Shown here: positions 541 to 63,602 of the stretch, in pieces
Layout of the letters: each line of letters opens with the position of its first letter
Position numbering within the stretch: position 1 is the stretch's first letter
NCBI RefSeq assembly: GCF_001194135.2
Contig: NC_069008.1
Span: forward strand, 14,654,686 to 14,718,685
Origin: Octopus bimaculoides
Taxonomy: Eukaryota
Length of the DNA stretch: 64,000 nt
Reading direction: 5' to 3'
Notes under the pieces: model-generated
Database searches by the model: none
What the model was told of the DNA's origin: nothing
The model's input: only the letters and a program-made list of their open reading frames with translations
Position numbers and translations under genes: made by a program

Positions 541-1006
541 GTCGGAGACTTTTAACATACGTCACCGGTAATATTGAAACAAGTGGAATAATTATTAACG
601 ACACCGCTTATTTTGTGTGTTTCTAATTAACTGATTGTAATTATCTCATGTTAAAGTGAATGTTTGTTTGTGCATAAGACAGGGCGACCTACGTGTTTCA
701 GGGTCGGTGATCCATGATCTTCGTTAAATATTTCATTTCATCGCAGCTCACATCGTTAATTGATTGTTCCCTATTTTACAGAGGAAATGGCTTTTAATCA
801 ATCATTGAACTTTCCTCACCTTTCTTCACTTTTCATTTCGACTTTATATCAAACATTCTACTGGTGAGTAGAAAATATATCTACATTACATCTGTTCCAC
901 ACGTGTAAACGGAGGTCTATGATATCTTAAGACAAGAAACTGAACCGTAATTAACCCACAGGCATTTGTCAGTTTGTTTGTTTTTAAGAATTCATCAAGG
1001 ATTAAT
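541..1006 (+). promoter_or_regulatory. Conserved 5' cassette of Z1 (putative promoter/5'UTR; predicted exon 782-863 and short intron)
   Basis: Aligns by eye with 41527-42007 and the reverse complement of 49616-50085; ctattttacAG acceptor and ctg/GTGAGT donor at 864. Confidence 0.7.
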
Positions 1007-2083
1007 ATGGAGAACGTTAATCACTTGGACAATTCTAAGACGAAACACAAAAAATTACATAACTGTGATATATGTGACAAATCTTTTGCTTCAAACAGTG
1101 TTTTAAGAATCCATACAAGGATCCACACCGGAGAGAAACCGTTTCACTGTGACATATGTGGGAAATCTTTTGTTAATAATTCTCATCTTGTAGTTCACAA
1201 ACGTAGTCATACGGGCGAAAAACCCTACAATTGTGAAATATGTGGAAAATATTTTGTCAATAATAGTGATTTAACAAAGCATAAAAGAATCCACACTGGA
1301 GAGAAACCCTATCACTGTGAAATATGTGGGAAAAAATTCGTGCATAGCAGTGTCTTGACAACACACAAGAGGATACACACCGGAGAAAAACCTTGTCGTT
1401 GTGATGTATGCGGCAAGTCTTTCACACGAACTTCTCGTCTTGTTATTCATAATCGTATTCACACTGGAGAAAAACCTTATCACTGTGAAATATGTGGCAA
1501 GTCTTTTTCTGATAATTCCAATCTTGTTATCCACATTCGTAGTCACACCGGGGAAAAGCCATTCCACTGTGAAACTTGTGGGAAATCGTTTATTACTAAC
1601 AGTGATTTAAACAGACACAAGAGAATACACACGGGAGAGAAACCGTTTCATTGCGAGATATGTGGCAAGTCTTTTCTCTCGAACAGTGACCTAATAAAGC
1701 ATAAAAGAATACACACTGGAGAGAAACCTTTTCCATGTGAAATGTGTGGTAAATATTTTGTAAATAATTCTTGTCTTGCTGTTCACAAAAGAATACATAC
1801 TGGAGAAAAAACTTATCATTGTGAAATATGTGGAAAATCTTTTGTGTCTAATAGTGATTTAACTAAACATAAAAGAATACATACGGGAGAGAAACCCTAC
1901 CATTGTGAGATATGTGGGAAGTCTTTCTCTGTTAATTCCAGTCTAATAGTTCACAAACGTAGTCACACTGGAGAAAGACCATATCATTGTGAACTATGTG
2001 AGAAATCTTTTATCACTAATGCTCTCTTAAAAACACACCAACAGACACATACTGGAGGGAAGCCTTTTAACTGTGAAATGTGA
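1007..2083 (+). CDS. C2H2 zinc-finger protein Z1, 12 tandem fingers
   Basis: ORF of CxxC-x12-H-x3-H repeats with TGEKP linkers. ATG at 1007 lies in the attaatATGgagaa context shared with paralogs; the track's TTG start at 974 is upstream. The ORF stops at TGA where the second Cys of a 13th finger is expected. Confidence 0.93.
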   Translation: MENVNHLDNSKTKHKKLHNCDICDKSFASNSVLRIHTRIHTGEKPFHCDICGKSFVNNSHLVVHKRSHTGEKPYNCEICGKYFVNNSDLTKHKRIHTGEKPYHCEICGKKFVHSSVLTTHKRIHTGEKPCRCDVCGKSFTRTSRLVIHNRIHTGEKPYHCEICGKSFSDNSNLVIHIRSHTGEKPFHCETCGKSFITNSDLNRHKRIHTGEKPFHCEICGKSFLSNSDLIKHKRIHTGEKPFPCEMCGKYFVNNSCLAVHKRIHTGEKTYHCEICGKSFVSNSDLTKHKRIHTGEKPYHCEICGKSFSVNSSLIVHKRSHTGERPYHCELCEKSFITNALLKTHQQTHTGGKPFNCEM

Positions 2084-4051: not shown

Positions 4052-4415
4052 TCATCATCATCGTTTAACGTCCGCTTTCCATGCTAGCAAGGGTTGGACG
4101 ATTTGACTGAGGACTGGTGAAACCGGATGGCAACACCAGGCTCCAATCTAATTTGGCAGAGTTTCTACAGCTGGATGCCCTTCCTAACGCCAACCACTCA
4201 GAGAGTGTAGTGGGTGCTTTTACGTGTCACCCGCACGAAAACGGCCACGCTCGAAATGGTGTCTTTTACGTGCCACCCGCACAAGAGCTAGTCCAGGGGC
4301 ACTGGCAACGATCTCGCTCGAAAACCCTGCAAAGGCCAGTCAGGCGGTACTGGCAACGGTCACGCTCAAGATGGTACATCTTATGTGCCACCTGCACGAG
4401 AGCCAGTCCAGAGGC
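4052..4415 (-). mobile_element. RTE 3' UTR copy (5'-truncated)
   Basis: Nearly identical to 35345-35573; related copies at ~10098-10268 (+) and 26180-26258 (-). Confidence 0.75.
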
Positions 4416-7782: not shown

Positions 7783-8661
7783 TCAAGTCTCCTCTTTAAC
7801 AGATTTCCCTCCAGAGTGTATTTGTTTGTGTCTTCTTAAAAGACTCTCAGTGATAAATGATTTCTCACATATTTCACAATGAAAGATATTTTCTCCAGTA
7901 TGAATTCTTCTGTGTTTTGTTAAATAACGATTACAGACAAAATATTTATCACATATTTCACATTTGAATGGCTTTTGTCCTGTATGTCTTTTCTTATGTC
8001 TGTTTAGATCACTTTTAGAGACAAAAGCCTTCCCACAGATTTCACACTGATAAGGTTTTTCTCCAGTGTGGATTCTTTCATGAACTACAAGATGGGAATT
8101 CTGAGTGAAAGATTTGCCACAAATTTCACAGTGAAATGGGTTGTCACCCGAATGAATTCTTTCATGCTCTGTTAAATTACTCTTTTTACCAAAAGATTTC
8201 TCACATATATCACAATGATATGGCTTTTCTCCAGTGTGACTACGTGTGTGAATTATCAATTGTGAATTATCACTATACGTCTTCCCACACACTTCACATC
8301 GATGCAGTTTATCTCCTCCGTGTATCTGTTTATGTCTTTTTAGGTGACTGTTAGTAATAAATGATTTGCCACATATATCACAGTAAAATGGTTTCTCACC
8401 TGTATGTATTTGCACATGAACTGCAAGATGGGAATTATTACTGAAGGATTTCCCACAAATTTCACAACGGAATGGTCTTTCCCCAGTGTGGATTCGTTTG
8501 TGAACGACAAGATTAGAATTATCAGTGAAGGATTTCCCACATATTTCACAGTGAAACGGTTTTTCTCCAGTGTGACTACGTATGTGGATAACAAGATGAG
8601 AATTTTGGCTGAAAGATTTCCCACATATTCTACATTGAAACTGTTTTTCTCCAGAATGCAT
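7783..8661 (-). CDS. C2H2 zinc-finger protein A, 10 intact fingers (ORF downstream of a premature stop)
   Basis: 292-aa ORF, close paralog of B and C with the same C-terminus (SGGKSVKEET). The start Met lies inside finger 1; the paralog-equivalent ATG is at 8868. Confidence 0.75.
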   Translation of the reverse strand: MHSGEKQFQCRICGKSFSQNSHLVIHIRSHTGEKPFHCEICGKSFTDNSNLVVHKRIHTGERPFRCEICGKSFSNNSHLAVHVQIHTGEKPFYCDICGKSFITNSHLKRHKQIHGGDKLHRCEVCGKTYSDNSQLIIHTRSHTGEKPYHCDICEKSFGKKSNLTEHERIHSGDNPFHCEICGKSFTQNSHLVVHERIHTGEKPYQCEICGKAFVSKSDLNRHKKRHTGQKPFKCEICDKYFVCNRYLTKHRRIHTGENIFHCEICEKSFITESLLRRHKQIHSGGKSVKEET

Positions 8662-8868
8662 TTCTTTGTGCGTTAAAACTTCTTGTTCTGAAGAGAAAGT
8701 TTCCTTACAAATCTCTCAGCTAAATTCAGGAATATCTCTGTACAATGGCTCTTGTTTGATAAATGTTTCACTATGTACAGCTTTCTCATTTCTGTCTGTC
8801 TCTCTAACTGTATCTATATTGTTAAAAATAGTTGTATTAGAAGTATCCAAGTGATTAACATTTTCCAT
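8662..8868 (-). pseudogene. Interrupted N-terminal leader of gene A (MENVNHLDTSNTTIFN...PEFS*EICKETFSSEQEVLTHKE)
   Basis: Hand translation from the ATG at 8868 is in frame with the 8661 ORF and matches gene B, except TGA at 8718-8716 where B has TGT (Cys). Confidence 0.85.
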
Positions 8869-9594
8869 ATCAATCACTGGGGAAGCTGAGAAATATCTGT
8901 AAGTTAATCTGATATGGTTCAGTTTCTTGTCTTAGCTATCACAGACATCCATTGACAAGTGTGGAACACATGTAACATATGTAAACTTTCAACTCACTGC
9001 TAGGATGTTTGTTGATGGCCTGGTTCTCTCAAACGGACACACATTTTGTTGTAGACAGAAAGTCTTCTGTTTGTACATTAAGAAATATGGATATGGTTAA
9101 CGGATGTTATGTTAGTTGTAAAATTATAACAATGTTCAGGATTGGTAGCTCATATTCTAGTAAAATTGGTGTTCACTGACCACAAGTTGATACAGGGCAT
9201 CCGGCTACCACAAACTGTAAAATAAGATGTAACTATGTAAGATGGTGTACAAAGTGTGCATATGTATATGTATGTGTGTATAATTTTTCATGTCAACTAA
9301 AATTTGGTACAAGCAATAAATGATTTAACCTTTTAGCATATAGATTATTTTGTCAAATGTAAAGCTTATTTTTTAAGTAATCATTTATTATCTAATAGCT
9401 CCAAGATTTTGATGATGTGATTGTTATTTTTACAATAATTTAGTGTGAGCTGAAAACAGCAAGGATACTATTCATGGTCAGCTCTGACTGAAGGAGGCCA
9501 AAAAAAAGTATGAGAGGTTGGATCTAGTCAGTTCGAAGATAAAAACAGGAAGAATACGTGGGCCTGATATGGTCAGTTTAAATGCTAAAGAGTT

Positions 9595-9755
9595 AAGCTG
9601 TAGTGAAATGAAAATATTTAACAGTGATCGTGGTGGAACACTGATTCCAAAACATGTAGGTCGTCCTGTCTTATACACAAACGTTTACCTTAACATGAGA
9701 TAATTACTGCATATAATTAGATTAGCACAACTAATTAAAAACAAACTGAAAAATC
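9595..9755 (-). repeat. Partial 5' cassette upstream of gene A
   Basis: Reverse complement contains taattatctcatgttaa, aagacaggacgacctacatgttt and aatattttcatttca motifs. Confidence 0.65.
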
Positions 9756-11199
9756 CAGCAGAAGATTGATTTGGTTTTTCTCAAATAAGAAAAACTTCGA
9801 CCAAGATCAAAAAGTTAACAGAAGAAATGACAGATATATGCAGACCCTTCTGAAATTCCAAGTGTTATACATACAAAATTTCCTGCACCTGTCATGAACT
9901 AGGACCACTTGATTCAATCATCTAGATGATTCAGATCTCATATAGAAGCAGTTGTTGAAGCCGAAGGTGGCTTTATTGAATAACATTATAGAAAAGAAGA
10001 TTTTTATCCTCATAGCATTTTTTGATAAATAAAGTTACGTTATTATATATGTTTTTTTTATAAATATAAATCTGTTCTCAAATATCTTACACACCCTTTG
10101 CCAGTACCGCCTGACTGGCCTTCATGTGGGTGACACGTAAAAGCACCCACTACACTCTCTGAGTGGTTGGCGTTAGGAAGGGCATCCAGCTGTAGAAACT
10201 CTGCCAAATCAGATTGGAGCCTNNNNNNNNNNTGGAAAGGGGACGTTAAACGATGATGATGATGATGATAAGCATACCTATACAAGTGTGCCCCCATCCT
10301 GAATTGGTTTCTCCATAACTTCCAGAAAAATTGATATTTTGTCATGAAATTTTCTAAAAATACTTTTCAGGTGTACACTCTAATTATTTCAGAATTTGTT
10401 TCGAAAAACATTTTCTGGGACTGGGGAGAGGAATTTCAGAAAATTCACACGAGTGGACTTTGTTTCCTCATAACTTATGGTCATTTTTTTTAATAAATTT
10501 TTTTACAAATACCTTTCAAAGTGTGTAAATCGCGATTATATCAGAATCTGATGAAAAAAGAAACATGTTGAGCACTCTCACATACCTATTGGCGCACATT
10601 TTTTTCAAAATTTCAAGTTTCGTTTCTTAGATATATATGCGATGAGTGTCGGAATGTATGTCTGCGAACCCATCAATTTTGTTTTGTTTTTTTCATCACC
10701 TTGATAATTAAGTATTTCATTTCATCACAGTTTACATCGTTAATTTGATGCAATCGCTTTTAGTTGATATCGAAAATTCATATTATTCGTGTGTGTGTGC
10801 GTGGAGATAAAGTTTTCAGAAAATTAGTAACACGAAGAAGCCAACGAAGGTCAAAAAGCGCAGAAATTCAAATAACCCTTTTCTATTTCTTAACAGAGAC
10901 TGAAATATTATGAAATACAAATTCAAAACTAAATTTGTTGACAAACTGGTTGAGTAACGCGGGAGAAGAAATTCTGCAGACAAGTGGCCGATAATGTTCG
11001 TCTGCGGACGACGCAAAAGGTTAATTGGACCTCTTCGTTTCCAGCACAACTGATATCGTTAATTGGTGGCAATCCATTTTAATTAATATATTATTTGTGT
11101 GCGTAGATAAGTAAAAGGAAACGAATAAATAACACAAAGAAGCCAATTTTTTTTACAAAGCAATAAACCCAATCACCTCGCTCTAATTATAAACAGACT

Positions 11200-12010
11200 G
11201 AATATTATGAAATATATACATCGATGATAATTAATTAATTACTTTTCGTTTTCAGTTAAAAATTAATTCAAGACTGTGTTATCTCCACTGATAGTAATTA
11301 ATCAATCAATAAGTTCGATTAGTGAATAATCTGACTGGTCTGTATTTTTCCCATTGACTAACCAAGCGTAACATACCGTTAAAGTGTTTGTTATGCGTAA
11401 CGACAGTGTTTTGTTGTCATAATGCAAGTGCAACGAATTAATGTGATAATACAGATCAATATTTGCTTTATTATTAATATGGACATTAAGTATATATCAA
11501 TTATGTTTTTACAATGTTATAGCTGAGGTATTCTGTATCTGCTCACTACAGATGGGTGGAGTTAGATATAAACAGCTATTTATATTAATAAATGTCACTG
11601 ATATCCGTCTGACATGCTAGAAATAGTAGTGAAAAGAAGACAATTTCATTAGTAAAGCCCTGCTATATGGAAACGTGACAGTAACAGCTGAAACGCTTTT
11701 GAACATAAACTCTGTTCGACCGAGCAGTCCTGGGACTTAACAACACCCTCTTGGCTTCTACTTTACCCAGAACCTCCAACCAAATAATAAGAACTTTCAT
11801 CCGGTACCCACTTTATATTTTACGTTACCTAGTGAACATCATCAAAGCTATTTGTCCTGATAGCATTAACATTGTTTAATGTTTCTAATTTCAACAACAC
11901 AACTACCAAGCGTAAAATTTCGTTATAGCGTTTGTGTTAGATGTATTTAAGATACTTACGAGACGATATCATTATGTATGGGGTTAATGAAAGAGGTTTA
12001 GATGAAACAA
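11200..12010 (-). repeat. Distal upstream module shared by the A, B and C loci
   Basis: Reverse complement aligns with 15060-15410 and 31790-32590; each copy is co-oriented with its ZNF gene. Confidence 0.6.
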
Positions 12011-12399
12011 CGGTATAGAGCAGAGGTTTCTGGAGTAATCATTCAACAATGTTATGCGTGGAAATATTTGAATATATATATAGCGAGGGACATACAGAGT
12101 TATTATACATACTTTCGTACTCTTATCTGTTATTAGATTTGGGTTGTTTTTTTTATTTTTACCTTAGCTTGTTTAAGTCATTGGACTGCAGCCATGCTGG
12201 GGCACTTCCTCGAAGAGTTTTAGCCGAAAGAATTGAAACTAATACTTTTTTTTAACCTGGTAAATATTCTGTCAGTTGTTTTTGCCAAACTGCTTAGACA
12301 CGGTGACATAAACAAAGCAGCACCGGTTGTTAAGCGATATGACCCCTGGACATAAATGTGATTAGAAAAATACAAGAGAAAGTTGAGGGGCTTCTAGCA

Positions 12400-14294: not shown

Positions 14295-14620
14295 TAATCC
14301 AGTACTGGGTCAATCCCACTGCATGGCACCTAGGGCAAGTGTCTTCTACTATAGCCCCAGGCTGGCCAAAGCCTCGAAAGTGAATCTGGTAAATAGAAAC
14401 TGAAAGAAGTCTGTCGTAAATGTGTGTGTGTGTCCTGGACCACTGCTTGACAACAGGTGTTGGTTTGTTTACATCCCCGTACACTAGCTGTTCGACAAAA
14501 GAGTTCGGCAGAATAAATAACAGTCTTAAAAATAAGTACTGGGATCGATTTGTTCGACCAAATCCTTCAAGGCGGTGCTCAAGCATGGCCGAAGTCCGAT
14601 GACTGAAACAAGTAAAAGAT
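14295..14620 (+). mobile_element. SINE of a second abundant family
   Basis: 3' end aaggcggtgctc.agcatggcc..agt...tgactgaaacaagtaaaaga also at 1-110, 12165-12340 (-), 19545-19735 (-) and 33200-33250. Confidence 0.7.
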
Positions 14621-15614
14621 ATGGACAAAACTACTTTTCGTTTCACCCATTCAGGATAGCCAAGTCAATTTTGTACATTCCGCAGCTTTTGGTTTCATTT
14701 TAATCTACATAACGCTTATATGTACCTCAAACGAAAGATCTTGCAAATTTAGTGTATAAAATATATTCCTACAACCGAGTTCTGACAAATGAATTAAGTC
14801 CAAAATTAGCTGCAGTAATAACTTTGTCATTTACTCTCTCACCATGTCTCTTTCTATCGTTCTAGTTCTCTCTCTCTCTCATAAATACAGTCTTTATCTC
14901 TCTTTCACACTCTCTCTATATCTCTATCTTCCTCTCTCTCTCTTATAAATATGCACACTCTTTTTCTCTCTCGCTACGTCCGTATGTCTCTTTCTATCTG
15001 TCCCTCTCATAAATATACACACACTCTCTATCGTTCTCTCTCTTTCTCCATGTATATATGATAGCTATTTCCCGGCACTTCATGAACGATTCCATTAACT
15101 CGTAGCTTCGTGGTGCTATCCTATCTAAATCTCTTGTTAACCCCATACCAAATGCTATCATCTTGTAAGTATCTTTAATATATCTAACACAAACACTTTT
15201 ACACTTGGCTGTTTTTTAAACTATAAATATTAAAACATTTAACAATGTTATTAGGGCAACCAGCTTTGATGTTGAATCCATAACATAATATAACGAGGAA
15301 ACTTTCAGCTATAAATCAATCGCAGGGAAAAATACAAACCAGTCAGTTTATTCAGTAATTGAACTATTAACTTATTAACGAAAAGTAATTAATCATTAGC
15401 GATATATATAAATATATATATATATCATAAGGTTCCAGTCTCTGTTTAAAATTAGAACAAAGTGACTGGGTTTTAATTGCTTTGTTCTGAACAAAGTTAG
15501 CTTCCTCGTGTTATTTATTCTTTTTCCTTTTACTTATTATCTATGCACACAAATAATATGAACTTTCGATGTCAATTAAAATGGATTGTAAACAATTAAC
15601 AGTGTAATGTAGTT

Positions 15615-15780
15615 TGTAATGAAATGAAATATGCAATCCTGAAGGTGGTGGAACATCGACCCTGAAACATATAGGTCGCCTTGTCTTATCCGCAAACATT
15701 ACCGTTCACCTTAACGCGAGGTAATTCATACATACGAAATAATGAGACTTAGCTCATGTAATTAAAAACATAATGAGTGG
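15615..15780 (-). repeat. Partial 5' cassette lying antisense to gene B
   Basis: Reverse complement contains aagacaaggcgacctatatgtttcagggtcg and atatttcatttcat, as at 680-750. Confidence 0.65.
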
Positions 15781-17580: not shown

Positions 17581-18113
17581 CTGTCAGAGTTCTTTCACAC
17601 ATTCTGTAACCAGTGGCTTTCTGTTCATCATGTCTCCTCTTCTCTCTGGTCTTTTCCTTTCTATTCCATTTTTCTTTTGTCATTTTGTCACATATATATA
17701 CATGTGTACATGCAAGCAGGTACATTTTTCTCTGCAACATCTAACATTGTCATTTTTCTTTTTTTAATTTTTTAAATATTTTACAGTTGTGCTAACTGAA
17801 CAGTCCATTACAACCTCTTGAAGAGTTTCCACCAGAAAGTCTGCTTCCAGCCATTTGTTGAGGTTGCAGAGTTTTCAACCAACACAACATTCATCAATCA
17901 CACCAGCATTTCCTCTTATGCAAATAGCTATTTTGTGTCATTTAGGAAGAATCCTGTTTGCAACAAGCATTCAAATTGTCCAAAGAAAATATACCTATAT
18001 CACATTTGTTCTACAATTTGTAAACAGAAGTCTGTGATATCTGAGACCAGCAACAGAACTGTAATAGTTTAACTCACATTTATCAGTTTTTCAAAACTTC
18101 CTCAAGAATTAAT

Positions 18114-19526
18114 ATGGAGAACGTTAATCACTTGGACACTCCAAACAATGTTTTTAATGACAGAGATACAGAGACAGGCAGAGATGAGAAAGCTGTACAT
18201 AGTGAAACATTTATCAAACAAGAGCCATTGTACAGGGATGTTCCTGAATTTAGCTGTGAGATTTGTAAGGAAACTTTTCCTTCAGAACAAGAAGTTTTAA
18301 CACACAAAGAAATGCATTCTGGAGAAAAACAGTTTCAGTGTGGAATATGTGAGAAATCTTTCAGTCAAAATTCTCATCTTGCTATCCACATACGTAGTCA
18401 CACCAAAGGAAAACCATTTAACTGCCAAATCTGTGAGAAATCCTTCAGTAGTAGGTCTCATCTTGCAGCTCATGTGCGAATACATACTGGAGCGAAATCA
18501 TTTTACTGTGATATATGTGGCAAATCGTTTATCACTAACAGTCACTTGAAAAGACATAAACAAATACATGGAGGAGATAAACTGCATCAATGTGAAGTGT
18601 GTGGGAAGACGTATATTGATTATTCACAATTGATAATTCACACACGTAGTCACACTGAAGAAAAGCTGTATCATTGTAATATATGTAACAAATCTTTTGA
18701 TAAAAAGAGTAATTTAACAGAGCATGAAAGAATTCACACTGGAGAAAAGCCATTTCACTGCGAAATATGTGGGAAATCCTTCACTGATAATCCTAAACTT
18801 GTCGCTCACAAAAAAATCCACTCGGGTGAAAAACCATTTCACTGTCAAATCTGTGAGAAATCCTTCAGTAATAGGTCTTATCTTGCAGTTCATGTGCAAA
18901 TACATACAGGAGAGAAACCATTTTACTGTGATATATGTGGCAAATCGTTTATCACTAACAGTCACTTGAAAAGACATAAGCAGATACATGGAGAAAATAA
19001 ACTGCATCAATGTGAAATGTGTGGGAGGAAATATATTGATTATTCACAGTTGATAATTCACAGGCGTAGACACAATGGAGAAAAGCCCTATCATTGTGAA
19101 ATATGTGAGAAATCTTTTGGTAAAAAGAGTAATTTAACAGAACATGTAAGAATTCATACAGGAGAAAGCCCATTTCACTGTGAAATTTGTGGGAAATCTT
19201 TTACCAAAAATTCACATCTTGTAGTTCACGAAAGAATCCACACTGGAGAAAAACCTTATCAGTGTGAAATCTGTGGGAAGGCTTTTGTCTCTAAAAGTGA
19301 TCTAAACAGACATAAAAAGATTCATACAAGACAGAAGACATATAAATGTGATATATGTGATGAATATTTTGTCTGTAATCGTTATTTAACAAATCACAAA
19401 AGAATACACGCTGGAGAAAGCATCTTTCATTGTGAAATATGTGAGAAATCATTTATCACTGAGAGTCTTTTAAAAAAACATAAACAAATACATTCTGAAG
19501 GGAAATCTGCTGAAGAGGAGACTTGA
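18114..19526 (+). CDS. C2H2 zinc-finger protein B, 15 fingers (first atypical)
   Basis: Intact 470-aa ORF; leader MENVNHLDT; internal repeated finger blocks. Confidence 0.95.
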   Translation: MENVNHLDTPNNVFNDRDTETGRDEKAVHSETFIKQEPLYRDVPEFSCEICKETFPSEQEVLTHKEMHSGEKQFQCGICEKSFSQNSHLAIHIRSHTKGKPFNCQICEKSFSSRSHLAAHVRIHTGAKSFYCDICGKSFITNSHLKRHKQIHGGDKLHQCEVCGKTYIDYSQLIIHTRSHTEEKLYHCNICNKSFDKKSNLTEHERIHTGEKPFHCEICGKSFTDNPKLVAHKKIHSGEKPFHCQICEKSFSNRSYLAVHVQIHTGEKPFYCDICGKSFITNSHLKRHKQIHGENKLHQCEMCGRKYIDYSQLIIHRRRHNGEKPYHCEICEKSFGKKSNLTEHVRIHTGESPFHCEICGKSFTKNSHLVVHERIHTGEKPYQCEICGKAFVSKSDLNRHKKIHTRQKTYKCDICDEYFVCNRYLTNHKRIHAGESIFHCEICEKSFITESLLKKHKQIHSEGKSAEEET

Positions 19527-20739
19527 AAAATTGTTCTGTTTATCTTTTACTGGCTTCAGTTATTAGACAGCAGCCATGCTGGAGCAACACCTTCAAGAAT
19601 CTTAGTCGAACAAATTGACCTCAGTACTTTTTTTTTTTTGTTAACCATGGTACTAATTATGTTGGTCTCTTTTTGCTGAACCACTAAGTTATGGGGATAT
19701 GTACACACCAACACCAATTTTCAAGCAGTGGTGATGGGACAGACACAAAGACACATACAAATATATATATATATATATATATCCAAAAATGATTTCAAAG
19801 GGATATGTAATCCAGGCAGTTACCATGTTTCCTCTTAAATCGGTTTTGTATGCTGGCTAACCACAGTGAATGTTGTTGATACCCAAATTAGCAATAAGTT
19901 GCTAGACTCTGGTAATTTTTCTCACTTGGTAAATCCAAGTCTTCTATCCAGTACTGCATAGTTTCCATAGAGTAAGTAATAGTATTAATAATGATCAGGG
20001 GAATGAAGATTTGCCACATCTATAATTTTATTAAACAGTTATTTACAGCATTCTTTTGTGGACCTACATGCATTTCGACTGCACACTGTTAGATGTGCAT
20101 CCTGGGCGTTATTGTCAGTATAGTTTTATCAGAGCCCATTGTTTACTGCCATTCAACGTTAAGCTGGCATGAGAAACATGGATTGGTGCTGGACTGATAG
20201 ACAGCCTTGGGACTTTGGTTTGCACTGGCACTCCCTTAGGTTGGCCCCAGATGGTGGCCTGAGTGTTCCTATAGCATCTTGGTAGGTGCAATCCTGGTTG
20301 AATGGCCTTCATTCCTGAGGAAACTACGAATACAAAAATGAGTCTGCAGCAAATCCACAATACCATACAGCTGTCAGGCACTGTAAAACCAGTGGCTCTG
20401 GGGATAAGGAAGGGTCTCCATGTCAGCCCCAATCATGCCAAGGTGAAGAACGACCAACTTACTCCTGATCAGGGAATAACGGATCCTGACACCAGTGTCC
20501 CATCGTCGCTGATCCTACATAAGGGACAGGCCGGGCCATTTTGTTCTCGATTATGATTCCCATTCTCTAGTTCTTCAGGGTAATCAACTCCCTGACAATC
20601 TTGCTGTGGATCCTTTTGCTGATATCAGGCTCCCCACGCATGTCCCCTCCTCACTGAATGAGGACAGTGTGCCCACTGGCGATCCTTCAGGAAGTGATGT
20701 GACCCTCAGCCCATCAATGGACAACTTCACCCTCGAGAT

Positions 20740-32820: not shown

Positions 32821-33891
32821 CAACTACACAAATTCACATAGATTATATATATAGACAGCAATGTATAATCATAGACAATATAAGGATTGATTATATCTAC
32901 ACACATCTATATACTTATGTATATAAACAGATATAGATATAGTCATAGATTTCATAACGATCTATATCTACATTTATCTATAAACATACGAGGGAGTACT
33001 GAAAATTTCCTGCCTTTAAGGGTGTCTCGAAAGGCCTGGTTGGAAGCCCAACCTTCCAAGATGTTTTACGGGGTTTAGAAAAATTGAAGGACTGCTGCAA
33101 TAAGTGTCTGAATCTGAGATGGGAATATGTTGAGTAAGATCGTAATTAACTGATCATCCTATATTTTCTTTTACCTAAAGTCAGATTTCTTTGACTAAAG
33201 GCGGTGCTCCAGCATGGCCACAGTCAAATGACTGAAACAAGTAAAAGAGTATATATAGGTGTGTGTGTGTATGCGCATGTGTATATATTTTTGCCTCCCT
33301 GTGTTGAAATTCTGTGATTATTATAAATGAACATCACTCATTTCCAATGTTATGCAAACATGTCTGGCCATGGGGGAATATTTACCCCTTTTGGTGACAG
33401 GAAGGGCATCAGGTCATAGAAAATCTGTTTGGTCCATGCAAGCATGGAAAAATGCACCACATCATCATCATGTAGTAGTAGTAGTAGTAGTATCTGCATA
33501 GGTTCACATCTACTTTATGAGACATCTTATGTTGTCATATTTTCTCTTGCTTTACAGTTCTGCTAAGAGATCATCCCCAGATGAAGAATTATTGCACCAG
33601 AACATCTGCTGCCAATTATTTATGGATGTCCATTTTCCACTCTACATATCTTCCATTAACCCATATCCACCTTTATTCATTTAGAAATGATTCTTCAAAT
33701 TTATGACAAATTGTAGGTCTCTTAAAGGTTGGACTCAGTCTGCAACAAGCAGTCTGGTAAATAAAAAACACATCCACATTGCTTATTTTATTTATGTCAA
33801 AGCAATCTCATGATATCTAAGATAAGAAACTGAGCCATGACAGATATTTAAAGATATTTCTCAGCTTTTTAAGAATTCCTCAAGAATCAAT

Positions 33892-34941
33892 ATGGAGGTT
33901 AATCACCTGGACAATTCTAACACAACTGTTTTTAACCATATAAATACAGTTAGAGAGATGGACGGAGATGAGAAAATTGTAGACAAAAATGTTACTGAAT
34001 ATCGTTGTGAGATTTGTAGGAAGGGGTTCTCTTCTGAACATGAAGTTTTCACACACAAAAAAACACACACAGGAGACAGACAGTTCCGTTGTGGAATATG
34101 TGAAAAATCTTTCAACCAGAAATGCCATCTCGTCATCCATATACGTAGTCACACTGGAGAAAAACCCTTCCGCTGTGAAATATGTGAGAAATCGTTCACA
34201 GATAATACTAATCTTGTAGTTCACAAAAGAATCCACACCGGAGAAAAACCATTCCATTGTGAAATATGTGGGAAATCTTTCACTGATAATTCTAACCTTG
34301 TCGTTCACATAAGAATCCACACTGGAGAGAAACCGTTTCACTGTGATATTTGTGGGAAATATTTTGTTGCTAACAGCGTCTTAAGAACACACAAACGAAT
34401 ACATACTGGAGAAAAACCATACCGTTGTGAGATCTGTGGGAAATCTTTTATTGAAAATTCAAAGCTTACTATCCACAGACGTAGTCACACTGGAGAAAAG
34501 CCATATCATTGTGAAATATGTTGGAAATCTTTTGTTAGTAAGAGTAATTTAACACAACATGAAAGGATTCACAGTGGAGAAAACCCATTTCACTGTGAAG
34601 TGTGTGGGAAATCGTTCTCTCAGAATTCCAGTCTTGTGGTTCATGAAAGGATCCACACAGGAGAAAAACCTTATCACTGTGAAATATGCGGCAAGTCTTT
34701 TGTCTCCAACAGTGATTTAAACAGACATAAAATTATACACACTGGAGAGAAACCATTCAAATGTGAAGTATGCGACAAATATTTTGTCAGTAACAGTTAT
34801 TTAACAAAACACAGAAGAATACACACTGGAGTAAACATCTTTCATTGTGAGATTTGTGGGAAGTCGTTTATCACAAACAGCCTGTTAAAAAGACACAAGC
34901 AAATACACTCTGGAGGGAAGTCTGTTAAAGACGAGACTTGA
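33892..34941 (+). CDS. C2H2 zinc-finger protein C, 11 fingers (first atypical)
   Basis: Intact 349-aa ORF; C-terminus SGGKSVKDET places it with A and B. Confidence 0.95.
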   Translation: MEVNHLDNSNTTVFNHINTVREMDGDEKIVDKNVTEYRCEICRKGFSSEHEVFTHKKTHTGDRQFRCGICEKSFNQKCHLVIHIRSHTGEKPFRCEICEKSFTDNTNLVVHKRIHTGEKPFHCEICGKSFTDNSNLVVHIRIHTGEKPFHCDICGKYFVANSVLRTHKRIHTGEKPYRCEICGKSFIENSKLTIHRRSHTGEKPYHCEICWKSFVSKSNLTQHERIHSGENPFHCEVCGKSFSQNSSLVVHERIHTGEKPYHCEICGKSFVSNSDLNRHKIIHTGEKPFKCEVCDKYFVSNSYLTKHRRIHTGVNIFHCEICGKSFITNSLLKRHKQIHSGGKSVKDET

Positions 34942-35337: not shown

Positions 35338-36870
35338 ATCATCATCATCATCATCATCATCGTTTAACGTCCGCTTTCCATGCTAGCATGGGTTGGACGA
35401 TTTGACTGAGGACTGGTGAAACCGGATGGCAACACCAGGCTCCAGTCTGATTTGGCAGAGTTTCTACAGCTGGATGCCCTTCCTAACGCCAACCACTCAG
35501 AGAGTGTAGTGGGTGCTTTTACGTGTCACCCGCACGAAAACGGCCACGCTCGAAATGGTGTCTTTTATGTGCCNNNNNNNNNNNNNNNNNNNNNNNNNNN
35601 NNNNNNNNNNNNNNNNNNNNNNNNNNNNNNNNNNNNNNNNNNNNNNNNNNNNNNNNNNNNNNNNNNNNNNNNNNNNNNNNNNNNNNNNNNNNNNNNNNNN
35701 NNNNNNNNNNNNNNNNNNNNNNNNNNNNNNNNNNNNNNNNNNNNNNNNNNNNNNNNNNNNNNNNNNNNNNNNNNNNNNNNNNNNNNNNNNNNNNNNNNNN
35801 NNNNNNNNNNNNNNNNNNNNNNNNNNNNNNNNNNNNNNNNNNNNNNNNNNNNNNNNNNNNNNNNNNNNNNNNNNNNNNNNNNNNNNNNNNNNNNNNNNNN
35901 NNNNNNNNNNNNNNNNNNNNNNNNNNNNNNNNNNNNNNNNNNNNNNNNNNNNNNNNNNNNNNNNNNNNNNNNNNNNNNNNNNNNNNNNNNNNNNNNNNNN
36001 NNNNNNNNNNNNNNNNNNNNNNNNNNNNNNNNNNNNNNNNNNNNNNNNNNNNNNNNNNNNNNNNNNNNNNNNNNNNNNNNNNNNNNNNNNNNNNNNNNNN
36101 NNNNNNNNNNNNNNNNNNNNNNNNNNNNNNNNNNNNNNNNNNNNNNNNNNNNNNNNNNNNNNNNNNNNNNNNNNNNNNNNNNNNNNNNNNNNNNNNNNNN
36201 NNNNNNNNNNNNNNNNNNNNNNNNNNNNNNNNNNNNNNNNNNNNNNNNNNNNNNNNNNNNNNNNNNNNNNNNNNNNNNNNNNNNNNNNNNNNNNNNNNNN
36301 NNNNNNNNNNNNNNNNNNNNNNNNNNNNNNNNNNNNNNNNNNNNNNNNNNNNNNNNNNNNNNNNNNNNNNNNNNNNNNNNNNNNNNNNNNNNNNNNNNNN
36401 NNNNNNNNNNNNNNNNNNNNNNNNNNNNNNNNNNNNNNNNNNNNNNNNNNNNNNNNNNNNNNNNNNNNNNNNNNNNNNNNNNNNNNNNNNNNNNNNNNNN
36501 NNNNNNNNNNNNNNNNNNCTGAACATCTGCCACAAACAAAAACTAACTTGCTAGTTAACCTGCCTTTGATGTTGCTGCACCTCTTATGTGTCCATAGCTT
36601 GCACCGGGTACATCTTATAGAGTTACTACCTACTCCTTTTCTACATACTGAGCAGGGCCATCTACCTGAAGGGGTTTGTGTTTTATCTACCTTCCTACTT
36701 ATTAGGATTTTGGTTTTAGCTAGGTTGACTCTAAGGCCCTTCAATTCTAGACCTTGCTTCCACACCTGAAACTTCTCCTCTAGTCCTGATAGTGACTCCG
36801 CAATTAGGGCAAGGTCATCAGCATAGAGGAGCTCCCAGGGGCAACCTGTCTGTGGAAGAATATTCCTCAT
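35338..36870 (-). mobile_element. RTE-clade LINE, 3' portion spanning a gap
   Basis: LLYADDL RT motif followed by a Cys-rich insert; 3' end ...ggaaagcggacgttaaac(gat)n. Confidence 0.85.
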
Positions 36871-41028: not shown

Positions 41029-41526
41029 TCTTTTCTATAACGTTTTAGATGTCGGAGATTACAAATATGCAAAAAAAAATTTATTTCACTCCCGCCTATT
41101 CCCCCCTCCCCAATTTAAAATCATGAACTTTTTTCGAAATTTTCAAAACTTTAAATATATATAATGAATATATTAAAAGTTGACAATTTTTTTTTTATCT
41201 TATATTTATTTTGTATACAAATAATACAACATTACATAAGCTGATAAGTTGTTTACTGCAGTGCATAAGGCGAAATTACGGAAATTATGCTATTGTTTCT
41301 TTTCTGGAAACTCGCCACGTACCGGCAGCTGATAGCTCACGGTCCATGGAACACCACTTTGTGTTGCACTCGATTAAACTACTAACATCTTCGGAACAAA
41401 ACCTTTGAATGCTGGTTGCCTTCGGTTATCTTCTTCGACCATCACTCACTCCCACTCCGTTTGCCGTTTTACTGTCCGTGTTCCGGCGTCACTGAAGAGT
41501 GACACCGTTTTATATGTAAGAAAGAT

Positions 41527-42007
41527 GTCGGCGACTTTTAACGTACGTCACCGGTGTCATTGAAACAAGGGGAATAATTATCAACGACACCGCCTACAGG
41601 CTGTGTTTTTAACTGTGCTAATTATATCATACGTTGTAATTATCTCATGTTTAGGTAGGTGAACGTTAATGTTTGTGCTTAAGACTGGGTGATGTTACAT
41701 GTTTCAAGCTCGGCGTTCTATCACCTTCATGATTAAATATGTCATTTCATCACAGATTTACATCGTTAATTAGTTGTTCCCTATTTTACAGGACAGATAA
41801 CATGGCTTTTAATCAACAACAAATCAATCAATGAACTTTTCATTCGGACTTTATATCAAACATTCTACTGGTGAGTAGAAAGTATATCTACATTACATCT
41901 GTTCCACACATGTAAACGGAGATATGATATCTAAGTCAGGAAACTAAACCATAATAGATTAACTCACAGACACGTGTCGGTTTTTAAAGAATTCCTCAAG
42001 AATTAAT
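41527..42007 (+). promoter_or_regulatory. Conserved 5' cassette of gene D
   Basis: Same motif order as at Z1; acceptor ending 41791, donor GTGAGT at 41871. Confidence 0.7.
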
Positions 42008-43141
42008 ATGGAGAACGATAATCACTTGGATACTTCAAACACAAATGTTTTTAACAATTTAGATATGGTTGCACAGACTGATATAGATGAGAAACCTGTT
42101 CTTGGTGAAGTATTTACTCAAGAAAGATCGTTACAGGAAAATGTTACTGAATATAGATGTGATGTTTGTAGGAAGACATTCTCTTCAGAACGTGAAGTCT
42201 TCACGCATAAAGAAATACACAGTAAAGAGAAACATTATCAATGTGAGGAGTATTTTGTCTCTGTTAATGTTTTAGGAATACACCAACGAAAACACGCCCA
42301 AGTCAAACCGTTGGGCTGTGAAATATGTAGTAATAATTCTAGTCTTATTATCCACGTTTGCAGTCACACAAGCGAAAAACCGTTTCACTGTGAAATGCTC
42401 AAGAAATCTTACTCTGGTAATCCTAGTCTTATAGTCCATAAACGAATACACCCTGGTAAAAAGGCCTATCACTGTGAAATCTGTGGAGAATGTTTCTGTC
42501 AGAAATCTAAGATGACTTTACATAAATATAGTCACACTGGAAAGAAGCCATTCTATTGTGATATATGCGGGAAATGTTTTGTGAGGAAGTGTACTTTATC
42601 AACACACACAAAAATTCACACTGGAGAGAAACCCTGGCACTGTGAAATATGTGAGAAGTCTTTTGCGAAATCTAGCCATTTAAGCAGGCATAAATTAACA
42701 CACACTGGAGAAAGACCTTTCCCTTGCAATATATGTGGGAAGTCTTTTATTACTAATGATAACTTAAAAACACACAAGATGATACATACTGGAGAAAAAC
42801 TATTTCGCTGTGAAATATGTGAGAGATCTTTTGTCTCTAATACTCATTTAAGCAGACACAACAGGATACATACTGGCGAGAAACCCTTTCATTGTGAAAT
42901 TTGTGGGAAATGCTTTGCCTCTAACAGTGATTTAAACAGGCATAAAAGAATCCACACTGGAGAAAAACCATTCCATTGTGAAAAATGTGGGAAATCATTC
43001 TCTGATAATTCTAATCTTGTTGGTCACATCCGCAGTCATACTGGGGAAAGACCTTATCATTGTGAAACTTGTGGGAAATGTTTCGTGACCAGTAGTCACT
43101 TAAAAAGACACATACAAACACATACTGGAAAGAAGACTTGA
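42008..43141 (+). CDS. C2H2 zinc-finger protein D: atypical finger 1, three broken fingers, eight intact fingers
   Basis: Intact 377-aa ORF; paralog of E; fingers 2-4 carry in-frame deletions or a Cys-to-Leu change. Confidence 0.93.
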   Translation: MENDNHLDTSNTNVFNNLDMVAQTDIDEKPVLGEVFTQERSLQENVTEYRCDVCRKTFSSEREVFTHKEIHSKEKHYQCEEYFVSVNVLGIHQRKHAQVKPLGCEICSNNSSLIIHVCSHTSEKPFHCEMLKKSYSGNPSLIVHKRIHPGKKAYHCEICGECFCQKSKMTLHKYSHTGKKPFYCDICGKCFVRKCTLSTHTKIHTGEKPWHCEICEKSFAKSSHLSRHKLTHTGERPFPCNICGKSFITNDNLKTHKMIHTGEKLFRCEICERSFVSNTHLSRHNRIHTGEKPFHCEICGKCFASNSDLNRHKRIHTGEKPFHCEKCGKSFSDNSNLVGHIRSHTGERPYHCETCGKCFVTSSHLKRHIQTHTGKKT

Positions 43142-48193: not shown

Positions 48194-49615
48194 TCATGTT
48201 CCACTGTTTAAAGTCTTTCTGTTTGCATGTATTTGTTTGTGTCTTTTTAAGTTTCTGTTCGTCCCAAAAGATTTCCCACAGATATCACAATGATGAGGTC
48301 TTTCTCCAGTATGACTGCGTACATGACCGACAAGATTAGAATTATCAGAGAATGATTTCCCACATACTTCACAACTAAAGGGTTTTTCTCCAGTGTGGAT
48401 TCTTTTGTGTTTCTTTAAATCACCGTTAGAAACAAAACATTTCCCACATATTTCACAATGAAAGGGTTTTTCTCCATTATGTATCTTTTTGTGTCTGTTT
48501 AAAGTACTATTAGAGACAAAAGACTTCTCACAAATTTCACAGCTAAATAGCTTTTCTCCAGTATGCATCATCATGTGTTTTTTTAAGTGACCGTTAGTAA
48601 TAAACGATTTTCCACACTTTTCACAATAACAGAGATTTTCTCCAGTGTGTATTCGTCTGTGAGATGTAAAATCACTTTTAGCAACAAAATTTTTCCCACA
48701 TATTTCGCACTGCCAGGGTTTCTCACCAGTATGCACTGATTTGTGAGTATCTAAGCAGCTATATTTCACAAAAGCTTTCCCACATATTTCACAGTGCCAG
48801 GGTTTCTCTCCAGTATGTGTCATTTTGTGAACGATAAGATTCGATTTCTGGATGAAATTTTTCCCACATATTTCACAGTGGTGAGGTTTTTCTCCTGTGT
48901 GTATTCTCTCGTGTGTTGATAAATTACTCTTCTTCACAAAACATTTCCCACATATGTCACAATGAAACGGCTTCTCTCCCGTGTGACTACGTTTATGTAC
49001 AGTCAACTTACATTTCTGATTGAAACATTCTCCGCAAATTTCACAGTGATAGGACTTATCTCCACTGTGTAGTCGTTTATGAACTACAAGACCAGAATTA
49101 CCAGAGTAAGATTTTCCGCACATTTCACACTGAAACGGTTTTTCTCCAGTGTGACTACGTTTGTGGAAAACAAGATTAGAATTATTTATAAACGACTTTC
49201 CGCATATTTCACAGGGGAAGGGTTTATCTCCAGTATGTATTCTTTTGTGTGTGGTTGAATTACTCTTGTTGACAAAACATTTCCCGCATATGTCACAACG
49301 AAACGGCTTCTCTCCAGTGTGACCACGTTTATGCACGGTCAGCTTCCATTTCTGATTGAAACATTTTCCACATATTTCACAGTGATAAGTCTTATCTCCA
49401 GGGTGTATTTCTTTATGCTTCAAGACATCATATTCCGAAGAGAATGACTTCCTACAAACATCACATCTATATTCAGTAATATTTCCCTGTAACGATCTTT
49501 CATTAGAAAATGTTTCATTAAGAACAGGTTTCTCACCTTCGTCTGTTTCTCTAAATGTTTCTATATCACTAAAAACATTTGTGTTTGAAGTATCCAAATG
49601 ATTGCTATTCTCCAT
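48194..49615 (-). CDS. C2H2 zinc-finger protein E, 15 fingers (first atypical)
   Basis: Intact 473-aa ORF with MENSNHLDTSNTNVF leader; convergent with D. Confidence 0.95.
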   Translation of the reverse strand: MENSNHLDTSNTNVFSDIETFRETDEGEKPVLNETFSNERSLQGNITEYRCDVCRKSFSSEYDVLKHKEIHPGDKTYHCEICGKCFNQKWKLTVHKRGHTGEKPFRCDICGKCFVNKSNSTTHKRIHTGDKPFPCEICGKSFINNSNLVFHKRSHTGEKPFQCEMCGKSYSGNSGLVVHKRLHSGDKSYHCEICGECFNQKCKLTVHKRSHTGEKPFHCDICGKCFVKKSNLSTHERIHTGEKPHHCEICGKNFIQKSNLIVHKMTHTGEKPWHCEICGKAFVKYSCLDTHKSVHTGEKPWQCEICGKNFVAKSDFTSHRRIHTGENLCYCEKCGKSFITNGHLKKHMMMHTGEKLFSCEICEKSFVSNSTLNRHKKIHNGEKPFHCEICGKCFVSNGDLKKHKRIHTGEKPFSCEVCGKSFSDNSNLVGHVRSHTGERPHHCDICGKSFGTNRNLKRHKQIHANRKTLNSGT

Positions 49616-50085
49616 ATTAATTCTTGGGGAATTCTTTAAAAATTGACAAATGTCCGAGAGTTAATCTATTATGGTTCAGTTTCTTGTCTTTGATATCACA
49701 GACCTCCGTTTACATGTGTGGAACAGATGTAATGTAGATATATTTTCTACTCACCAGTAGAATGTTTGATATAAAGTCCAAATGAAAAGTGAAGAAAGGT
49801 GAGGAAAGTCCATTGATTAAAAGCCATTTCCCCCTGCCTTGTAAAATAGGGGACAGCCAATTAACGATGTAAGCTGCGAGGAAATGCAATATTTAATCCT
49901 GAAGGTGATCGAACACCAACTGTGAAACATGTAGGTCGCCCTATCTTATTAACAAACATTAACGTTCCCCTTAACAAGAGATAATAACAACGTATGATAT
50001 AATTAAACAGAGCCATTAGTCAGCGCCGTTGATAATTATTCCCCTTGTTTTTGAATGACACCGGTGTCGTACATCAAACGTTAAG
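49616..50085 (-). promoter_or_regulatory. Conserved 5' cassette of gene E
   Basis: Reverse complement matches the Z1 and D cassettes; donor intron starts at 49754; GACACCGGTGTC palindrome at 50057-50068. Confidence 0.7.
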
Positions 50086-55495: not shown

Positions 55496-56110
55496 ATTAA
55501 TTCTCAAAAGCTGAAAATTGTCTTTAGGTATAATCTACCGTCGCTCACTTCGTCCCTTTCGATATTGCACATCTCTGTTTACATGTGTGGAATATTTCCA
55601 AGGTAGATACATTTTTCTGCTCACTGCTAGAATGTTTCTCGCTGATTAATTCACAATTTAATGATGTTCTGTCGTCCATAAAATATAGAGCGTCTATATA
55701 CGATTGGTAACAAACGTTCTTATGAGATTGGCATTACTCTACAAGTTACAATGGAGAGATCTGTAAACAAGAAGAGGTACGGCAGTGTAAAATCGATGTA
55801 GGCGAAAGAAAAATGTGTGTACTTTTAGTCTTAATAAATCGGGAATGTTTATCACGCAAAGAAGTAAAGTGGACAATGTTGTTCCAAGGTGACAATCGAA
55901 GGAACGAGTTTTTCTGACTTAAAGAGGAACAGAAAAATTAAGAATGATCAGAGTAAAAATAATATGGTTCATTAACTTGAGATAATTACAATACATGATA
56001 TAAGTAGATTAATTAGCTGAATTAATTACAAACAGATTCAACAGGCGGTGCCGTTTGCAATTTTCCCTTGTTGCAATGACACCGGTGATAGTTGTAAAGT
56101 GTCCCTAACA
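55496..56110 (-). promoter_or_regulatory. Variant 5' cassette of gene F
   Basis: Shares CACCGGTGTCATT, the tgtaattatctc motif, aaacattctagca/GTGAG and the short intron, but has a different middle segment. Confidence 0.65.
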
Positions 56111-63545: not shown

Positions 63546-63602
63546 TTAATATATTCAGAAACAGCTTCATTTTATATTAAATGCCTTTTATAGATAAGAT
63601 AA

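Follow-up and report, generated by a model that had tools for sequence, protein, structure and literature searches.

A shared non-coding 5' cassette, probably the inherited front end of an Octopus C2H2 zinc-finger gene family

Why should neighbouring zinc-finger (ZNF) genes with divergent finger arrays carry recognisably the same non-coding DNA ahead of their start codons? The question is raised by a stretch of 64,000 nucleotides (nt) of Octopus bimaculoides chromosome CM046628.1 (assembly GCA_001194135.2, ~14.65 Mb; hereafter the window), which holds eight single-exon C2H2 arrays, genes A to H. A cassette of ~490 nt stands before gene A, also called Z1, at 518-1006 on the plus strand, and recurs whole or in part before the other genes. 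We put at roughly 60% the probability that this cassette, rather than being a free-standing element, was inherited as the front end of a lineage-specific C2H2 family of Octopus (proteins starting MEN/MED-VNxLD). Judged from its sequence, it likely comprises a promoter and a non-coding leader exon, followed by a short intron and a start context. In total ~218 kb of octopod DNA was covered. The loci beyond the window were reached by way of family proteins, and the sample therefore tests whether family genes have the cassette better than whether cassettes always lie at family genes.

In gene A the cassette opens with an edge segment (TGTTTCTGAAAGTATTAAATAATGTCGGAGAC..., 518-561) that includes the AT-rich, TATA-like TATTAAAT. 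The homology of all other long copies begins here, and identity upstream of 518 is 32-38%, i.e. random. A preliminary description of this DNA had similarity stopping near CACCGGTG, but it starts ~45 nt further upstream, at TGTTTCTGA.TGTATTAAAT (518). Block M1 (561-607) reads GTCACCGGTAATATT (GTCACCGGT) ... AACGACACCGC in A. Other copies have the near-palindrome GWCACCGGTGWC and then TCATT here, with a perfect palindrome, GACACCGGTGTC, in E; the core of the block, TCACCGGT, is kept in 9 of the 11 copies that bear it. The ordered string of motifs described earlier is real, although the first block was given as common to all and Z1's own version, CACCGGTAATATT, differs from it by three mismatches. 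Next come M2 (AATTATCTCATGTT, 639-652), M3 (AAGACAGGGCGACCTACGTGTTTCA, 676-700) and M4 (TTAAATATTTCATTTCATCGCAG + CTCACATCGTTAATTG, 724-762; four matches against none expected). We take M4, by eye and without a motif tool, to be a TATA-like box (724-731) with an initiator-like CTCACA ~26 nt downstream (~750), one of three candidate start regions.

A pyrimidine tract (CTATTTTACAG, 771-781) leads into a putative non-coding leader exon (782-863) with an upstream ATG at 787-789 (AAATGGCTTTTAATCAA). Inspection of the leader revealed no conserved reading frame, and the upstream frame is never in frame with the ZNF: in D it stops within the leader, in E just short of the main ATG, and in A it runs across the main ATG in a different frame. 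This ATG has the conserved context AAATGGCTTTTAATCA at 787-789 (+), 41802-41804 (+) and 49825-49827 (-), and the Octopus sinensis copy described below reads AAAATGTCTTTTAATGA at ~9514. The upstream frames vary in length and suggest translational damping. The leader is followed by a putative 125-nt intron (864-988) with donor GTGAGT at 864-869, a branch-like TTAAC and acceptor AAG at 986-988. Across copies the putative intron measures 119-125 nt, which narrows the ~110-130 nt first proposed. The motif ctattttacAG, previously listed as common, has no AG at that place in E. A highly conserved core at 832-925 spans the end of the leader exon, the donor and the first 60 nt of the intron, and includes the conserved TTCCACACGTGTAAAC at 895-910. 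The second exon begins with 18 nt of 5' untranslated region (UTR; 989-1006) and the start context AATTAATATGGAG, with the ATG at 1007. This exon-2 leader with its start context (989-1009) is the best conserved stretch over 15 copies, at 70% between groups. The coding exon of A (1007-2083, +; 12 C2H2 fingers, 358 aa) is followed by a short conserved 3' flank (...TTATCTGCTAACATGTACATC, 2084-2136), where family-wide homology ends.

The donor falls in the same alignment column in A, B, D, E, F and G. As a separate observation, the conserved TGTAAAC supplies a second GT 41 nt past the GTGAGT donor (905, 41912, 49713 on the minus strand, and 61773). It is the sole donor-like site left in two compact copies described below, upstream gene Y (AAG followed by GTAAAC) and contig L007, and reads GTAAGC in copy 8a. 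By its letters this second GT might serve in alternative 5' splicing, or belong to a forkhead-type site (GTAAACA). The factor names forkhead-like for GTAAACA, Grainyhead-like for ACCGGT and ISRE-like (interferon-stimulated response element) for GAAACTGAAC are leads only. One shared upstream promoter spliced to all leader exons was ruled out, the genes lying on both strands.

Recurrence of the cassette within the window is far beyond chance. CACCGGTG occurs exactly four times against 0.11 expected, the 25-mer AAGACAGGGCGACCTACATGTTTCA (M3) has four matches at no more than three mismatches against none expected, and a 13-mer is found five times against 0.86 expected. An nhmmer profile of A, D and E recovered the copies at E-values from 1e-15 to 1e-168. 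With 401-1100 as a BLAST query, the window gave full-length matches at D (41525-42045, 77%) and E (50071-49578, 80%), and matches in two pieces at F and the so-called G-type copy. A five-way alignment and a motif table bear out the order of blocks given earlier before Z1 (518-1006), D (41491-42007) and E (50103-49616, -), with a variant form at F and the G-type copy. Unit D (41491-43141, +; coding sequence 42008-43141) has CACCGGTG at 41549-41556, M4 at 41733-41755, the donor at 41871 and TTCCACACATGTAAAC at 41902-41917. Unit E (48194-50103, -; cassette 49616-50103, coding sequence 48194-49615) has the palindrome GACACCGGTGTC at ~50059-50066, M3 at 49923-49947, M4 at 49874-49896 and its donor at 49754. 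Unit F (53882-56133, -; coding sequence 53882-55495) carries a diverged variant cassette (55496-56133) with CACCGGTG at 56080-56087, a GTGAGC donor at 55624 and TTCCACACATGTAAAC at 55577-55592.

Gene G requires a correction to the assembly. Unit G (61682-62638, +; coding sequence 61871-62638) retains a proximal cassette (61682-61870) cut by a gap at 60733-61681. A contig holding a distal and a proximal cassette (62952-63564, -; CACCGGTG at 63511-63518) follows a 100-N gap in inverted orientation. Reverse-complemented, 62952-63147 matches 61682-61877 at 196 of 196 positions, and both adjoin N gaps (60733-61681 and 62852-62951). The inverted overlap and the gaps together indicate that this contig is mis-scaffolded and that the G-type copy, previously counted as separate, is the upstream region of G itself.

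The list of five copies was also too short. The proximal 100-160 nt of the cassette stand directly before the ATG of all eight ZNF exons in the window, B, C, H and G included, and before that of the upstream gene Y; the distal block, with its CACCGGTG/CACCGGT type site, is present in A, D, E, F and G. Unit B (7783-9749, -) has a proximal cassette at 8869-9012, an insertion of ~480 nt and a distal block at 9590-9749 that is truncated at its 5' end and without CACCGGTG; its acceptor region is deleted. Its coding sequence (7783-8868, -; 10 fingers) is a pseudogene with an in-frame TGA at codon 51 (~8716-8718; Cys in gene C). In unit C (17958-19526, +) the cassette consists of its proximal part alone (17958-18113), which has lost both donor and acceptor and precedes an intact 470-aa reading frame of 15 fingers (18114-19526). 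Unit H (33741-34941, +) likewise has only the proximal cassette (33741-33891), with donor GTAAAT, before a 349-aa reading frame (33892-34941). The cassette is therefore less fixed than was first stated: B, C, H and 8b lack or truncate the distal block, C, Y and the three copies of locus L008 (8a-c) are without GTGAGT, having lost the GTRAGT donor altogether, and three copies are compact.

Beyond the window, a profile search with the N-terminal alignment gave ~10 full-length matches, the named ones from O. bimaculoides and O. sinensis. The N-terminus common to the window proteins is MENVNHLDTSNT...EKPV..ETF...TEYRCDVC, in which gene A has a deletion. Among family genes the proximal part was found in 15 of 16 and the CACCGGT block in 11 of 16; the proximal part lies directly before the ATG in those 15, on four chromosomes or contigs of two to three species. 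On a second O. bimaculoides chromosome (CM046627.1, locus L008) it precedes all three family genes (ATG at 6931 -, 10001 + and 15664 +), two of which also have the distal block, with TCACCGGT or TCACCGCT. On O. sinensis CM016873.1 (locus L009) a single ZNF exon in 73.6 kb carries a complete long cassette, in the order TCACCTGTATCATT, M2-M5, AAAATGTCTTTTAATGA, an insertion of ~340 nt, donor GTAAGT, TTCTACACATGTAAACG and an AAG acceptor; the change from GTGAGT to GTAAGT keeps the GTRAGT donor consensus. A compact form occurs in gene Y (L001 298-1359, cassette 101-302), in O. sinensis L006 (20634-20826, ATG at 20827) and in the Logan contig L007 (1441-1569). In it the CACCGGT block is joined straight to the last 90-100 nt, without M2-M5, leader exon or first donor, and in Y and L007 the junction falls just before GTAAAC. 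The ~260-300 nt concerned were either deleted from the compact form or inserted in the ancestor of the long form.

The exception among the sixteen is the first gene of O. sinensis L006 (P0126, ATG at 10001), which has no cassette. Separately, two tandem copies of a ~300-nt repeat adjoin its ATG in the cassette's place (L006 9400-10000). The cassette was also absent from the unrelated ZNF genes examined, in Argonauta hians locus L002 and in a 1278-aa gene of L008. The full-length D protein as a query retrieved almost only long vertebrate ZNFs and one cephalopod match, from Argonauta hians and of another ZNF family; a pseudogene-derived N-terminal query and one N-terminal alignment gave no protein matches, and two metagenome scans with the core gave none either. 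All alignments between fetched loci of the two octopus species were 65-76% identical, with no orthologous pair among them.

The linkage to ZNF exons claimed at the outset thus holds in all of the extra DNA fetched, and it bears directly on whether the cassette could be an ordinary dispersed repeat, a transposable element fragment or transposon-derived promoter lying near ZNF genes by chance or insertion preference. Some copies do look the part. Orphan X (15577-15778, -) has blocks M2-M4 and the start of the leader, then unrelated sequence and no ZNF exon, and orphans W1 (10691-10917, +) and W2 (11058-11268, +), also overlooked before, have the M4 block and the same downstream sequence as X. 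These are the sole unlinked copies seen, and could be orphan promoters or rearranged cassette remnants. The segment from M2 to the start of the intron is moreover just what the compact form lacks, and could be an ancient insertion. However, a dispersed repeat would hardly keep to a set distance from the ATG, and to one orientation, in 15 of 16 family genes, nor run continuously into coding sequence, as single A-E and D-E alignments do, colinearly from ~-470 to the stop codon. With one ZNF exon and one cassette in the 73.6 kb of L009, where no stray cassette motifs occur above chance, and with no transposon termini, we regard this explanation as very improbable.

How well the cassette is conserved relative to the genes depends on how the fingers are aligned. 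The raw comparison sets a Kimura two-parameter distance (K2P) of 0.19-0.22 in the cassettes of A, D and E against ~70% coding identity, and the contrast first drawn between a fixed cassette and strongly diverged fingers is partly an artefact, because the fingers were aligned out of register. Those of D and E are in register and colinear, and are 83% identical (78% at third positions), the cassette figure being 82%; for A and F/G no colinear finger partner exists, and best-match fingers are ~76% identical. Within the cassette, the ~90-nt core alone is unusually conserved. Global synonymous divergence (dS) of coding sequence for A-D, A-E and F-G (1.0-2.1) was dropped as inflated by non-orthologous finger alignment, and finger-by-finger and N-terminal codon comparisons were used in its place. 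Measured against dS of N-terminal codons, proximal cassette divergence (K) is ~0.3-0.7 of dS for most between-subfamily pairs and higher with F or H. In this comparison with synonymous divergence, which was proposed earlier, K lies far below dS for D-E (0.09 against 0.30) and above it for B-C (0.44 against 0.33). Over 15 copies, between-group identity is 56% from -152 to -101, 60% from -100 to -51 and 70% from -50 to -1, compared with 65% in the first 57 coding nt and 62% at their third positions (19 codons), which implies that most of the cassette evolves near the silent rate.

These values lend something to the idea that the cassette is hitch-hiking, co-duplicated non-coding DNA without a regulatory role, its similarity a matter of age. 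The D-E cassette is about as alike as the in-register fingers and their third positions, the between-group cassette is close to third positions, K for B-C is close to dS and to the ~70% identity of their flanks, and several intact genes do without half the cassette. We nonetheless think it an unlikely account. At 832-925 each A/D/E pair differs at 3-5 positions per 92-94 nt (95-97% identity in all three pairs), against ~80% in the rest of the cassette or 78% at D-E third positions (P = 1e-5 to 1e-7). Short islands, AACATTCTA, TGTAAAC, GATATC, AAACTGAACCAT, AGATTA and AGAATTAATATGG, are found in all copies, and AACATTCTA, TGTAAAC, AAACTGAACCAT and AGAATTAATATGG recur across species. The preserved donor consensus in O. 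sinensis, the specific decay of the cassette in pseudogene B, and the unrelated flanks of D and E (see below), which neutral co-duplication leaves unexplained, also speak against it. Two regimes can be discerned: in A, D and E the proximal cassette is 90-92% identical and the coding end 72-83%, and in B (the pseudogene), C and H the figures are 61-67% and 82-91%. This pattern fits constraint in the former and decay in the latter.

Since the best conserved stretch lies mostly inside the putative intron, one might ask whether the core is an intron-hosted small RNA (small nucleolar RNA, microRNA or mirtron) co-amplified with the genes. We give this very little credence. No Rfam family reached its gathering score in the window and none fell below E = 0.2 in the cassette, RNAalifold returned a consensus fold of -0.03 kcal/mol with one compensatory pair in eight sequences, and conservation straddles the exon/intron boundary. 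A further candidate, M3 as an antisense relic of a finger, was set aside: its 17-nt, 88% complementarity to HCEICG-coding DNA was judged a chance match, because it is seen only in E and tblastn with the finger consensus hit no cassette.

The borders of the homologous unit are its most distinctive attribute. Detectable homology extends from ~45 nt before CACCGGT to ~50 nt past the stop codon, 1.6-2.3 kb in all. Between D and E identity is 70-92% along the cassette and 78-90% along the in-register coding sequence, and drops to 25-33% (random) in the first 60-nt window beyond either end. The 3' end lies ~45-55 nt past the stop codon, and pairs of A, D, E and F have no colinear flank homology within 4 kb, only scattered dispersed repeats. 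The 5' edge, TGTTTCTGA.TGTATTAAAT, recurs on the second chromosome and in O. sinensis, with a similar 3' end (TCTAAAYTTWT..TC). Erosion combined with selection cannot explain the D-E edges, because silent sites are unsaturated and the similarly diverged flanks of B and C can still be aligned; copying or gene conversion confined to the unit is called for. Of the two causes that the preliminary description had offered for a sharp 5' edge, repeated copying, or conversion limited to the unit, is thus needed, and selection alone does not suffice in young pairs.

Copying could have been literal. The whole unit might be a copy-and-paste module with fixed termini, mediated by DNA or RNA, whose ends are the sharp edges; reverse transcription of an unspliced transcript with an internal promoter, or capture by a transposon, are possible routes. 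Both edges are sharp in the young D-E pair (third positions 78%, flanks random), the same termini are seen on two chromosomes and in two species, units lie in both orientations at a spacing of 5-8 kb, and the unit is about the size of a transcription unit. But the marks of such a mechanism are missing. Units A, D and E have no terminal inverted repeats, the longest words shared by 5' and 3' flanks are 6-7 nt, which equals the shuffle mean and leaves no target-site duplications above chance, and homology does not end in a poly(A) or A-tract on its 3' side. Long copies still have the intron and are therefore not processed retrocopies. Tracts smaller than the unit (the 5' part of F-G, the B-C arrays) indicate exchange inside units, and kilobases of extra flank common to B, C and H indicate ordinary segmental duplication. 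We hold such a module to be improbable.

To explain the sharp edges we prefer conversion that stops where old homology ends, because of these sub-unit tracts. F and G have in common only a tract from -640 to +60, 80-100% identical, and their finger arrays are non-colinear beyond it; their cassettes are 87-95% identical against 76% for best-match fingers. B and C show the reverse, with arrays 92% and cassettes 67% identical. Between A and E the leader exon is 96% identical and block U1 (562-640, starting CACCGG) 69%. As read from the alignments, such mosaic tracts are the signature of non-allelic conversion or recombination, and they mean that cassette and array are not one indivisible unit, contrary to the supposition that the two always travel together. 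It also should be considered that the case for conversion draws on a handful of gene pairs.

The proposal of a compact duplication unit, comprising promoter, leader exon and finger exon, fits the anatomy and the 1.6-2.3-kb extent of homology, but not the surroundings of B, C and H, which have several kb of extra flank in common, so the unit duplicated was not always compact. B (-) and C (+) lie head to head within an inverted duplication whose arms, the W unit (10691-12335, +) and the X unit (15778-14445, -), are colinear over ~1.3 kb and 67-73% identical; the inverted W/X pair, upstream of B and C, shows that both genes are part of a larger inverted duplication, and H has a fragment of the W/X unit upstream. 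The fingers of B match those of C at 89-97%, with partners in the order 1,6,7,3,4,10-14, from which it follows that the C array holds an internal duplication or conversion relative to B.

Taken as the inherited front end of the family, the cassette would work and spread as follows. Some 250 bp of upstream regulatory DNA, opened by the near-palindromic GWCACCGGTGWC site, would precede a non-coding leader exon of ~80-115 nt with its upstream ATG. A GTRAGT donor and a 119-125-nt intron would come next, the end of the exon and the first ~60 nt of the intron forming the strongly constrained core, and an 18-nt leader with the fixed start context AATTAATATGGAG would lead into a single exon for the whole finger array. 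We infer promoter activity, start position and splice-site use from this arrangement. All paralogues would thereby have transcription start, regulatory sites, control of splicing and control of translation (upstream frame, Kozak-like context) in common, so that family members would be regulated alike. The cassette would have spread along with its genes as these underwent tandem and inverted duplication locally and were dispersed to other chromosomes. Its similarity would be upheld by purifying selection on a few islands and by non-allelic gene conversion, with tracts that stop at the ends of old homology units and so produce the sharp edges, and it would decay in pseudogenes and rewired copies.

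Several points weigh against this account and keep our estimate where it is. The sample is small, at ~218 kb, and reaching loci by way of family proteins biases it toward linkage. Family-wide, the proximal cassette (56-70%) is no more alike than third positions (62%), and its similarity may be largely neutral. The reading frames of C, H and 8b are intact although these genes have no distal block, and neither leader exon nor GTGAGT donor is present in the three compact copies; the long cassette is evidently not indispensable. The acceptor is weak: most copies have AAG or GAG where CAG or TAG is usual. Three pairs of TATA-like and initiator-like motifs can be read, ~30 nt before and at GTCACCGG (the CACCGGT block), in M4, and at AGATTATA..TCAGTT 35 nt before the ATG, giving candidate starts at ~563, ~750 and ~972, and such matches are weak evidence because the DNA is AT-rich. 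TATA-like boxes can be read at 531-538 and 724-731; the second, in M4, has not been preserved in F, G, 8c and L009. Exact-protein look-ups matched genome contigs only and no transcript contigs. Finally, conversion across chromosomes is an assumption.

Further features of the window concern annotation and repeats. ZNF units lie in both orientations, 5-8 kb apart. The D, E and G proteins have no record as single reading frames; a public 644-aa plus-strand model (locus L005) ends at the stop codon of G and begins before window position 43882, and it probably fuses the finger exons of D and G (window ~42008-62638). A 223-nt repeat, 98% identical between copies, lies in the 3' flank of A (4052-4274) and in that of H (35351-35573), the latter adjoining a gap at 35574-36518; a young transposable element and an assembly duplicate are the two candidate explanations. 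Another, dispersed family of repeats ~200 nt long, with 70-90% identity and found in O. sinensis too, lies between ZNF units at 14-106, 12168-12335, 14425-14639, 19525-19747 and 33198-33248 in the window, and outside it at L001 3471-3549 and 7370-7530 and at L006 1385-1769. It is probably an element of the SINE (short interspersed element) type.

Clustered, lineage-specific C2H2 expansions in cephalopods have been reported from protein phylogeny, expression and chromosomal clustering (PMC9068888; PMC12513265), and the second of these papers does not contain the words promoter, upstream, UTR, exon, intron or motif. We found no description of the cassette in the papers that were searched, although absence there is no proof that it is undescribed. 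Cephalopods have among the largest C2H2 expansions known, and how these genes multiply and are regulated has been little studied at the DNA level. In one respect our finding is still ordinary, because tandem paralogues are expected to share a promoter and 5'UTR. Gene-sized units with sharp bounds recurring across chromosomes and species, together with a core of ~90 nt, raise it slightly above the routine and give it modest interest. In practice, a profile of the cassette is a marker for one subfamily (MEN/MED-VNxLD), and GWCACCGGTGWC, TTCCACACATGTAAAC and the upstream ATG are testable candidate cis-elements. Sharp-bordered, gene-sized units are also a case in which to ask whether conversion or module-wise copying drives expansion. 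A bolder proposal, which we think improbable, makes the 1.6-2.3-kb unit self-contained, with defined ends, and has it copied or converted time and again as one piece, both within and between chromosomes; its ~90-nt core and the palindromic CACCGGTG would act as a shared switch co-regulating dozens of paralogues. If true, such a copy unit would be a concrete mechanism for part of the cephalopod C2H2 expansion.

Three known systems offer points of comparison. Mammalian KRAB-ZNF genes consist of a 5'UTR exon, KRAB exons and a single finger exon, and evolve by tandem duplication and finger turnover. The octopus genes resemble them in having one exon for the finger array after small upstream sequence of putative exon character, and their clusters resemble KRAB-ZNF clusters in tandem and inverted duplication, in fast gain and loss of fingers with out-of-register similarity, and in recombination between paralogues. 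Unlike KRAB-ZNF genes, however, their upstream exon is non-coding, with no KRAB-like effector exon, and the N-terminal peptide MENVNHLD... is on the finger exon. Tandem gene families are also known to undergo concerted evolution by non-allelic gene conversion. The mosaic tracts with discordant histories seen here, and the abrupt end of homology despite unsaturated silent sites inside, are of that kind. Homogenisation in the octopus is weak by comparison with typical concerted evolution, at 60-90% rather than near-identity.

The third system is the ZNF genes of zebrafish chromosome 4, which share a 'sharp' TATA-box promoter architecture (bioRxiv 10.1101/2021.08.09.455629; PMC10547256). That feature is defined by the shape of start sites in cap analysis of gene expression (CAGE) and by the TATA box, and is tied to early zygotic activation and the miR-430 locus. 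The octopus feature, in contrast, is a ~490-nt block that includes a putative leader exon and intron, is known from sequence homology alone, and has a TATA-like box in some copies but not all. Even so, zebrafish chromosome 4 is the nearest parallel: there too a large lineage-specific tandem C2H2 family has many paralogues with the same promoter architecture, which is thought to co-ordinate their expression.

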